From NCBI RefSeq assembly GCF_000142905.1, contig NW_013657649.1, positions 124,001-188,000 on the forward strand: 64,000 nt of DNA, written 5' to 3'. Both the position numbers and the translations under genes were made by a program. The DNA is from Thecamonas trahens ATCC 50062. Taxonomy: Eukaryota; Protista; Apusomonadida. The first letter of the stretch is position 1. Every line of letters starts with the position of its first letter. Below the pieces are notes generated by a model. That model searched no databases, was not told where the DNA came from, and was given only the letters and a program-made list of their open reading frames with translations. Shown here piece after piece: positions 4,499-13,983 of this stretch.

Positions 4499-7400
4499 CT
4501 AGCTCTTGGCTGCGCGGGCCGCCCGCTTCTTCTTGGCCGCTTCGCGCGCCTTGCGCTTCCGCTCGCGCTTCGCCTCAAGCTCCTTGGCCCTTCGGTTCTT
4601 GGCCTCGGCCGCCTCAAACTCTTCCAGAAAGTCGGCAAAGATCCCGCACAGATGGTCGGCACTCGTCTTGGTCGGCTTTTCTGCAAAGACCTTGCACACT
4701 GCAAGGTGCTTGGTCTTGACCTCGTCAATCGCGCCATGGACCGCCTGCATCCGCTCGAGTGCTGCCTCGTGGAACGGGTCAAACACGTCCTTGAACACTG
4801 CGTCTTTCGTCTGACTCAGCTCCATGCCCACAATCTTGAGATTCTTGTCGAGGTTGCCGGCTGCAGCCTCGATCATGTCAAACGGGTGTCGCGCCGCTTC
4901 GGCTGCAAGCTTGAGGTCGTCCTTGAATGCCAGCACCTCGGAAAACTCGCGCTCCAGCAGCTCAGCCACGAACCGGAGCAGGTTCGACTTGCCGTCGATG
5001 GTCTTCGTCCCACCAACCTTGGCCAGAAAGTCCAGGTGGAAGCCGCGCTCCTTCTTCGAGTTCATAAAGTTGCCGATTGCCAGCAAGATCTCAAACAGCT
5101 TACCGAGCGCCTTGGACTCGTGGATTGCCGTCAGCGCACCTGAGAGCGCCACCACGCCCTCATCGACGTCGTGGACAAGGACCTCAAACTCCAGCTTGAT
5201 TTGCAGCGACCGCAGCCGCTGCGCCAACCGCGGAATGCCCATGATCGTGCGCACGTACTGCTCAGACTTGCCGAGCAAGCCAAGATCGCCGTCGTACGAC
5301 GCCACTGTCGCCAGGTCATCTGTCGTCGGCAGCGTCTTGACCACAAACGTGATAGACTCGGCCGTAAGCACCTTTTCGTCAAGTGAGAGCATCGCGTCGC
5401 GCAGCGCCTCGTTGCTCATACGGAACCGCGAGAGCATAATCCCGATCGCGTTCGACGCCTTGCCATCCAGCAGCAGCACCTTCTTGGGCCGCTTGGCGCG
5501 CGCAGCCTCAGCTTCGGCCTCTGCTGGGCTCAGCTTCTTGACGGGCCTCTTCGACGTAAACAGCTTTTCCATCTCGTCCCAGTTGAGCATCACGGAGCTC
5601 GGATTGAGACTCTCAAACACAGATCCGTTCAGCTCTACCGGCTTGACCTTGGACCAGTACAGTTTGCGCATCGGCACCTTGGCCTTGCGCGGCGCGCGAG
5701 GATTTGCTGCAGCTGGCGGTGGCGGCGGCGGCGGCCCGCCTGGTCCCCAGCCCCCAGGCGGCGGAGGCGGCGGCAGCGGCGGTCCGCCTCCGGGAGGAGG
5801 AGGTGGTGGTGGTGGACCGCCTCCGGGAGGAGGTGGCGGTGGTGGTGGACCGCCTCCGGGCGGCGGCGGTGGAGGCGGCGGCGGCGGTGGCCCACCTCCG
5901 GGCATCGGTGGCGGCGGTGGTGGTGGACCGCCGCTCGGCCCTGTCGCACCGGTGCCCGGACTCGAGCCGCTGCTCGCCGCTGCTCCGCCACTAGGCAGTG
6001 TAAACACACTCCCCATCCTCCGCTTCATCAAAATACGCCGGACCCCGATGCGGAACCGCAGCCGCGCTTCCTTGATCCGAGTCTCTTCGGTGATGGCTCC
6101 CAGCCGGGCTTTCTTGAGCGCCAGTGCCAACTGCGCTTGCAGCTCGTTGATACGGAGCTCATACCGCTGCAGCGTCATGCTTTGCCGATGGTCGGCCATC
6201 CTCAGTTGATGCTCATCCATGCTGCGCGCACACGCCAGGGCAGCCCGTGCGTCAGCGTTCTTGGCAGCCATCGCTTCTTCGGCCCGCGCTTGAATCATAC
6301 CGGCCTCCGACGTCGCCAGCTCATCTAGCTTGGCCGTCAGCTCGCAAACTGTGCGGTTGGCTTTGTCAAGATCGTCGTGAAGACCGTCCACGTACGCCCG
6401 AGTCTCCAGCGATGTCTTGGTCTTGAGTACCGCCAAGTTGGATGTCGGCTTGCCTGTGGCGCGGCCAAGCGGGTCCGCCGCAGACGCGTTCAGCTGCTGC
6501 AGGTAGCCCTCGGCCGCGGCGCGCGCTGTTGTGTGGTGTAAATCATCCACTGACGGGAGCGAAATCCCGGTTGTGAGCATTCCGGCAGCCTCCTCTTCCT
6601 CTTGCGAGAGACCCACGTGCGCAACCGAGGGCTCAACCGCGTCCGAGAGGAGCTGCACCAGCTGCTTCCACGCCTCAAGCCCTAGCGGTCCCCGCGTCGG
6701 AAGTGCCAGCAGCATCTGCAGTACTTTGACAAGCTGCGGGTACGCTGGCGTCACCCGCAGATTTGTCACAAGCATGTCGCACACCGCCCGCGGGTCTGAG
6801 AGCTCGATGCTTCGGAACTGAATCTGGGTAGCGTCGTAGTGCGCCGCATCGATGTAAAGCTCGATCTGCTCGCGTGCCGCCGGCACATCACTGTCCATCG
6901 AGTTCATGTATCCGATGGCCGCGTCAATGCTGGCAGCCTCGAGACTCTCCCGCCACGCCACCCGCACCGTGAGATCCTTTTCAGTGTTGATGACGCCGTT
7001 GAGAAGCGCCAAGCCGGCCACGCGCAGCGTCTCCGACTCGGTACACTGCATGGCCTCGAGAGCGGCAGTGAACGGGTGGTTTGCGCGGTCCAGCGTCCGC
7101 TGCGCATCCAGCGCCGCTTGTACGGCCTGGTGCGCTTCGTGCGACGCATGAGCCATCCGCGCGAGCACAAGCAGCGCCCGTGACCGCAGCGTCTCGTCTG
7201 CGTCGGCATGCAGCGTCCGCACAATGGTACTTGTGCCGTCGTTGATGCGCGTCATGGCCTTCGTGCCAGCACTTGTTTGCGTCAGCACCTTGATCACCTT
7301 GGTCGCTCGGGCGGCCACCTCGACGTCGTTTGGCTGCTTGTTGCGCTTGCGCACAAACTCACGCAGCACTTGCAGGACGTCGTCAAGCCCGTCGCGCTGC

Positions 7401-13800: not shown

Positions 13801-13983
13801 ATCCACCAGAACCCGTGCGCCCAGAGGTAGCGCTCGCTCCTCGTCCCCGTCCTGCGAGCGTGTCGACTCGCGTGGCGCGCCGCCGCTCGCGCCACGGCTG
13901 CGACGGGAGCGCGCCCGACCTCCCGCCTCCGACAAGCGGCTCCTCCTGTGACCTCCATGCCCTCCCCTCACCCTGACAGGCAT
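10849..13983 (-). CDS. Tandem CAP-Gly domain + coiled-coil protein (CLIP-170-like); probably the 5' part of the formin gene
   Basis: CAP-Gly1 [25 protein letters not shown]...HGLLV and CAP-Gly2 [35 protein letters not shown]. Likely ATG at 13983 (MPVRVRGG). Confidence 0.88.
   Translation of the reverse strand: [1044 protein letters not shown]

Follow-up and report, generated by a model that had tools for sequence, protein, structure and literature searches.

The minus strand of a 64-kb stretch of DNA from Thecamonas trahens ATCC 50062 (hereafter the window; all coordinates refer to it) carries two overlapping open frames, which we consider likely to be one gene that joins a pair of CAP-Gly domains to a formin. 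The likely gene extends from 13983 to 4499, encodes about 3,161 amino acids in the order two CAP-Gly domains, rod, putative GBD, FH3, FH1, FH2 and basic tail, and belongs to a family of five. Its open reading frame (ORF) is split by a one-base homopolymer difference, three C against four, which most probably reflects an error of the 2010 reference assembly; a mutation that arose in the cultured strain only is the less likely cause. In two environmental strains the locus has CAP-Gly and FH1-FH2 in one open frame; for the reference strain, the contigs of the isolate do not reach the site.

ORF1 (14238-10849, minus strand, 1129 aa) contains the two CAP-Gly domains and a helical rod. The second, formin frame (ORF2) is open from 11059 to 4499 on the same strand (2186 codons) and contains rod, putative GBD, FH3, FH1, FH2 and a basic tail. 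ORF1 and ORF2 share about 210 nt, which they read in different frames, and ORF2 reaches its first ATG only at 10528, codon 178. A sequence-only reading of this DNA had described CAP-Gly and formin frames that run together with no intergenic space, and a formin frame with no early ATG that stays open about 200 nt upstream; both descriptions agree with this layout. The parts that it had listed (two CAP-Gly domains, coiled coil, GBD/FH3, FH1, FH2 and basic tail) are also present, the Drf_GBD match being partial. The features are as follows.

4499-13983, minus strand: proposed single coding sequence of the CAP-Gly-formin, 3,161 aa if the CCC at 10985-10987 is read as CCCC; stop codon at 4499-4501
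13984-14238, minus strand: probable 5′ leader, not coding; holds a run of 12 G, 5 nt shorter in metagenome run X2
13630-13830, minus strand: CAP-Gly domain 1, with a divergent GNCDG; best PDB matches are CLIP-170/Restin CAP-Gly domains
13045-13236, minus strand: CAP-Gly domain 2, whose motif is the canonical GKNDG; TBCB and CLIP-170 CAP-Gly2 are its top PDB matches (3e-17)
7520-13044, minus strand: Ala/Glu/Leu/Arg-rich spacer of about 1,800 aa without a Pfam domain; Pro/Ser linker around the frameshift site
10985-10987, minus strand: frameshift site; CCC in the window (GGG on the plus strand), one base more in contigs of two metagenomes
7163-7519, minus strand: Drf_GBD match, partial (model positions 65-183 of 188, 36.6 bits)
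6638-7105, minus strand: Drf_FH3 (DID), Pfam 1.3e-11, 45.2 bits
5714-5932, minus strand: FH1 region, six poly-proline tracks of 6-11 Pro each
4616-5692, minus strand: FH2 domain, Pfam 6.4e-71; best solved relative is the mDia1 FH2 (8e-36)
4502-4615, minus strand: basic Lys/Arg-rich C-terminal tail without a DAD core motif

The frameshift site

When one C is added to the minus-strand CCC at 10987-10985, the translation continues from ...HAREVVP into ATVDAACIWSQ..., and the joined frame is free of stops for 3,246 codons from 14238. The peptide of this joined frame across the junction region is HAREVVPATVDAAC. The junction was examined at the DNA level by aligning the contigs of four sequencing runs to positions 8600-14500 of the window. 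Two independent environmental metagenome assemblies, which represent near-identical strains, have an extra G after position 10984 of the plus strand (GGGG against GGG in the window). One is from an estuary (run X2, 2025), where a 1,994-nt contig with seven single nucleotide polymorphisms (SNPs) spans 10244-12236, and the other is marine (run X7, 2016). The base found in these contigs is the very one that the sequence-only reading had added at GTCCC to restore the frame, and the protein of about 3,160 aa that it had expected is 3,161 aa long from ATG 13983 with this base.

Codon usage gives independent support to the joined frame. A codon-usage log-likelihood, for which nine further long ORFs of the window served as the training set, favours the ORF1 frame by 11 nats over 11058-10987 and the formin frame by 23-43 nats over 10852-10529, which are the 108 codons upstream of ATG 10528. 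The GC content of third codon positions (GC3) and the positional GC periodicity did not discriminate between the frames across the junction, because the sequence there encodes a Pro/Ser/Ala linker.

The relationships of the two halves were examined within the T. trahens genome, in which a Pfam scan gave 19 FH2 and 73 CAP-Gly matches. Four further loci combine CAP_GLY and FH2 in single uninterrupted ORFs.

Contig C9: 2,018 aa, AMSG_02330 (100% identical); CAP_GLY, FH3 and FH2
Contig C22: 1,725 aa; two CAP-Gly domains, GBD, FH3 and FH2
Contig C12: 1,646 aa; CAP_GLY and FH2
Contig C48: 876 aa, AMSG_08755; CAP_GLY and FH2

The formin half finds its best database match in AMSG_02330, and in a tree of all 19 FH2 domains the FH2 of the window is sister to that of AMSG_02330 with a support of 99/96. 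Among 52 CAP-Gly matches of the genome, the three that rank best for the window CAP-Gly2, itself excluded, belong to the formins on C9, C12 and C22. Both halves are thus closest to the same fusion genes, as expected if they have always been one gene.

The alternative that survives best is a real frameshift in the sequenced strain, which we regard as unlikely. The locus would then be either a fusion broken recently, now a pseudogene or the source of only a truncated CAP-Gly rod protein of about 1,044 aa, or a pair of neighbouring genes in which the formin starts from ATG 10528. The assembly does read CCC. Two adjacent genes would also fit the compactness of the genome (17 nt between the convergent stops at 4482 and 4499, and 174 nt between divergent starts) as well as the public annotation, in which the formin half is a separate gene, AMSG_07139. 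However, the in-frame version occurs in two independent wild strains, the 108 codons upstream of ATG 10528 are, by codon usage, coding in the formin frame, and every paralog, including the sister AMSG_02330, has the fusion in one ORF. A homopolymer miscount is also compatible with the 2010 date of the reference, the platform of which is not on record.

Several observations weigh against the reading as a single gene. The Logan contigs of the isolate (runs X1 and X5) have gaps at the site (10852-11068 and 10763-10991), so that they neither confirm nor contradict the CCC, and an assembly error is indistinguishable from a strain-specific frameshift on their basis. The searched run index has no RNA run of this organism, and none that contains sequence of the locus. 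Over the 44 codons (10984-10852) that separate the site from the ORF1 stop and encode a Pro/Ser linker, codon usage does not discriminate between the frames. Finally, the SNPs between the strains comprise 6 synonymous and 13 non-synonymous changes, so that purifying selection is hardly apparent in the rod and the linkers. The single gene with a miscounted homopolymer is nevertheless the reading that we prefer.

An exact pattern search of the JGI metagenome contigs with the junction sequence, at either homopolymer length, gave 0 matches. An FH2-based search retrieved one 1.7-kb JGI contig (Ga0207991_1030877) with 99% identity, which ends short of the junction. The estuary assembly also contains a contig of depth 61.7 that joins 9730 to 11257 and skips 1,526 nt, with only 21 nt on its shorter side. 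This contig is probably from another organism or a low-complexity match of Ala codons, and not a deletion allele.

The start codon of the joined gene is likely ATG 13983, as had been assumed at the outset. A run of 12 G on the minus strand (12 C on the plus strand) lies at about 14053-14064, approximately 70 nt upstream of this ATG, and it is 5 nt shorter in the estuary strain. An indel of 5 nt would break a coding frame, and therefore 13984-14238 is probably not coding; its translation is also unlike a protein. The run sits in a leader region shared with a divergent gene that starts at 14412.

Domains of the proposed CAP-Gly-formin

Pfam detects CAP_GLY twice in ORF1 (9.5e-40) as tandem domains. 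CAP-Gly1 has the motif GNCDG and CAP-Gly2 has GKNDG, and TBCB and CLIP-170 provide the solved CAP-Gly domains closest to the latter (3e-17). The best full-length matches of the N-terminal half are animal CLIPs, with approximately 30% identity over the head. Like CLIP-170 and CLIP-115, the window protein has tandem N-terminal CAP-Gly domains and Ser/Pro-rich linkers followed by a long helical rod. Unlike them, it has neither zinc knuckles nor an ETF/EEY tail, its CAP-Gly1 carries GNCDG, and its C-terminal half is a formin.

The approximately 1,800 residues between CAP-Gly2 and the GBD contain no Pfam domain and are rich in Ala, Glu, Leu and Arg and poor in Pro and Gly. Structure prediction of a 601-aa piece (10822-9020) gave long helices throughout. 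Outside this piece the spacer is a putative rod or coiled coil as judged from its composition. Internal repeats were not found by self-BLAST of the rod.

In ORF2, Pfam detects Drf_GBD (4.3e-9), Drf_FH3 (1.3e-11) and FH2 (6.4e-71), the last over model positions 4-371 of 372. The Drf_GBD match (36.6 bits, cut-off 30.1) does not cover the extreme N-terminal part of the model and corresponds mainly to the start of the armadillo/DID part. Six FH1 tracks of 6-11 consecutive Pro are located directly upstream of FH2 at ORF2 residues 1712-1782, and are presumed to be profilin-binding sites. The knob Ile, the post Lys and the GNxMN motif are known as critical actin contacts of FH2 from the literature on Bni1p and mDia1. 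In the alignment with mDia1, the actin-contact Ile ('aigImls' against 'nlsIflg') and Lys ('ggTKtid' against 'rdTKsad') are aligned, as is the GNxMN motif (GNFMN against GNYMN).

The sequence-only reading had seen no obvious DAD, and indeed there is neither a Drf_DAD Pfam match nor an (M/L)Dx(L/M)(L/M/I) motif after FH2; a motif search found no DAD-like motif in any of the five fusion formins. Therefore, classical DID-DAD autoinhibition is unlikely, and the regulation must differ from that of DRFs. The protein ends with ...KKKRAARAAKS, with no CLIP1_ZNF match by Pfam and no acidic-aromatic tail. Compared with mDia1 (DIAPH1), the window protein shares FH3 (DID), FH1 and FH2 and keeps the actin-contact positions (GNxMN, Ile and Lys), whereas it lacks a DAD, has a partial GBD match and has its CAP-Gly heads and rod, about 2,100 aa in all, ahead of that match. 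Its closest likeness is AMSG_02330, in which CAP-Gly, long helical rod, FH3, FH1, FH2 and basic tail follow one another in the same way and a DAD is likewise missing, and the two are 42-43% identical in FH2 and 52% identical in CAP-Gly. In contrast to the window gene, AMSG_02330 has one CAP-Gly domain and a shorter rod, shows no Drf_GBD at Pfam thresholds and is uninterrupted in the reference.

A possible link between microtubules and actin

The domain content suggests that the protein could couple actin assembly to microtubules. Animal crosstalk between the two systems uses multi-protein bridges, namely CLIP-170-mDia1, EB1-APC-mDia and spectraplakins, and Henty-Ridilla and colleagues are said to have described in Science in 2016 that the CLIP-170-mDia1 complex accelerates actin elongation from microtubule plus ends. 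Animal DRFs reach microtubules via FH2, via EB1/APC or via CLIP-170 in trans, whereas the CAP-Gly domains are built into the window protein. CLIP-170 binds mDia1 in animals (PMC2606960). By analogy, a single chain would tether actin assembly to microtubules as a cis version of this complex. In such a mechanism, an FH2 dimer would nucleate actin filaments and elongate them processively from profilin-actin brought by FH1. The dimer would display four CAP-Gly domains at the end of the long rod, an arrangement that resembles CLIP-170 except that the far end bears a formin where CLIP-170 has zinc knuckles. The rod would space the microtubule-binding end from the actin-building end, and the heads, above all CAP-Gly2, whose GKNDG is intact, may bind the EEY terminus of tyrosinated alpha-tubulin.

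CAP-Gly domains with GKNDG bind C-terminal acidic-aromatic tails, and the sequence-only reading had named the EEY/F tails of tubulin and EB1 as the targets. The first is available, as the alpha-tubulin of T. trahens ends with ...DYVEEY (beta-tubulin ends with ...GDYEPEY). The second is missing from the sole EB1 homolog found, whose C-terminal EB1 homology lies at C3:577244-577333: its open frame ends with ...DDVEDEAVEA and has no terminal aromatic residue, which makes EB1-dependent tip tracking of the CLIP-170 type doubtful. CAP-Gly1 with its GNCDG may be degenerate, so that its binding to EEY/F is in doubt. When CAP-Gly2 was modelled in complex with the C-terminal 45 residues of alpha-tubulin, in a run without controls, the score was 0.02, which counts neither for nor against binding. 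Judged from these termini and motifs, direct binding to tyrosinated tubulin appears more plausible than EB1-dependent tip tracking. The coupling between CAP-Gly and EB1 may be absent or different in T. trahens.

It is also conceivable, with a rather low probability, that the fusion is real and the CAP-Gly heads are not directed to microtubules, being bound to another EEY/F-like C-terminus or engaged in an intramolecular regulation that replaces the missing DAD. CAP-Gly domains of other proteins do bind non-tubulin aromatic tails, CLIP-170 binding its own zinc-knuckle tail, and the approximately 73 CAP-Gly matches in the genome suggest diversified targets. The absence of a DAD from all five fusion formins would fit the intramolecular variant. 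However, the window protein's own C-terminus (...ARAAKS) has no acidic-aromatic tail to be bound, alpha-tubulin offers a canonical EEY, and the closest matches to CAP-Gly2 are in CLIP-170 and TBCB, whose CAP-Gly domains bind tubulin. Microtubule-directed heads thus remain the reading that we follow.

A broader and decidedly tentative proposal is that apusomonads possess dedicated single-chain couplers of microtubules and actin, with five paralogs in T. trahens that have rods of about 0.3 to 1.8 thousand residues. The CAP-Gly heads would dock on tyrosinated alpha-tubulin independently of EB1, and the DAD-less formin would build actin off microtubular roots, for example for ventral filopodia or pseudopodia, as a natural cis form of CLIP-170-mDia1, which would suggest that such crosstalk already existed near the base of opisthokonts. 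Thecamonas is a gliding cell of the sister lineage of opisthokonts, and for this reason the family bears on when actin-microtubule coupling arose. If the proposal is true, a natural protein that unites a reader of tubulin tails with a processive actin polymerase would constitute a minimal system for microtubule-templated actin assembly, and a protein of this kind would be simple to test in vitro.

The gene family, its annotation and the surroundings of the locus

The CAP-Gly similarities point to a common ancestry of four of the five fusion formins, whereas an approximately unbiased (AU) test weakly rejects the monophyly of all CAP-Gly-formin FH2 domains (p 0.037). The fusion history may comprise one fusion with shuffling or losses, or several fusions. 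The uninterrupted ORFs of the four paralogs, and the otherwise uninterrupted long ORFs of the locus, also argue against the least probable explanation of the split, which we give hardly any credit: that the genome truly reads CCC and the frames are joined by an intron of length 3n+2 inside 11059-10852 (15 GT...AG pairs of such length exist in the overlap, but no candidate donor resembles a strong splice consensus) or by a programmed -1 frameshift at GTC-CCG (a -1 slip after GTC would yield the same peptide HAREVVPATVD, but the sequence there does not fit the slippery heptamer X XXY YYZ), neither of which is necessary given the extra base in the DNA of the wild strains.

Outside T. trahens, an exhaustive HMMER search with AMSG_08755 as the query found its ortholog P0139 (903 aa), which is 53% identical over its full length and combines CAP_GLY and FH2; single ORFs of Tara Oceans contigs encode it. 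Among the hits checked there was no other fusion outside T. trahens, and a search with the C22 paralog, which was not exhaustive, gave few and poor hits. A likewise non-exhaustive Atlas search showed no cluster of at least 50 members that combines CAP_GLY and FH2. Searches for this architecture, as the sequence-only reading had suggested, yielded four paralogs and one Tara ortholog. The fusion is lineage-specific, and we propose an apusomonad CAP-Gly-formin family with five genes in T. trahens. That reading had also remarked that the architecture was unfamiliar among characterised formins; it is not unique to this locus, being shared by the five genes, but it is undescribed in the papers that could be searched.

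The formins of T. trahens, including AMSG_07139, AMSG_02330 and AMSG_08755, have been analysed in a survey that identified PH domains as an apusozoan innovation (Pruyne 2017, PMC5628938). The alignments of that paper contain AMSG_07139, which agrees with the beginning of the window FH2; AMSG_07139 is therefore the formin half, treated as a gene of its own in the public annotation. The survey includes fusion genes without remark on their CAP-Gly domains, and CAP-Gly is unmentioned in its text and supplements. The reference annotation of the locus probably lacks about 1,100 N-terminal residues owing to one homopolymer base. In an exact look-up in the protein collection, the window ORFs (from M1, M86 and M178) and the ORFs of C22 and C12 had no match; of the ORFs tried, only that of C48 was found, as AMSG_08755. 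UniRef names both AMSG_02330 and AMSG_08755 'CAP-Gly domain-containing protein'. No paper joining CAP-Gly, formin/FH2 and domain architecture was found in the searchable literature, subscription journals lying outside the search. As far as could be searched, the architecture is present in databases and undescribed in the literature.

CAP-Gly domains are strongly expanded in the 28.7-Mb genome, where the 73 Pfam matches are distributed over about 45 open frames, many as tandem pairs or triplets, and several of these ORFs exceed 1,500 aa. On the 3′ side of the formin half, a convergent neighbour (373-4482, plus strand) has its stop about 17 nt from the formin stop at 4499-4501. With the convergent stops so close, the 3′ untranslated regions must overlap or be extremely short. 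On the other side, 174 nt separate the divergent starts of the proposed gene's leader frame and the gene at 14412.

Metagenomes from estuaries and from the sea, produced in several studies, contain sequences at least 99% identical to this locus, and wild Thecamonas-like populations are thus open to sampling for comparative work. Among JGI metagenome proteins of uncultured eukaryotes, ankyrin repeats are combined with FH2 in one protein (P0121, 1,820 aa) and with CAP-Gly in another (P0285, 634 aa).

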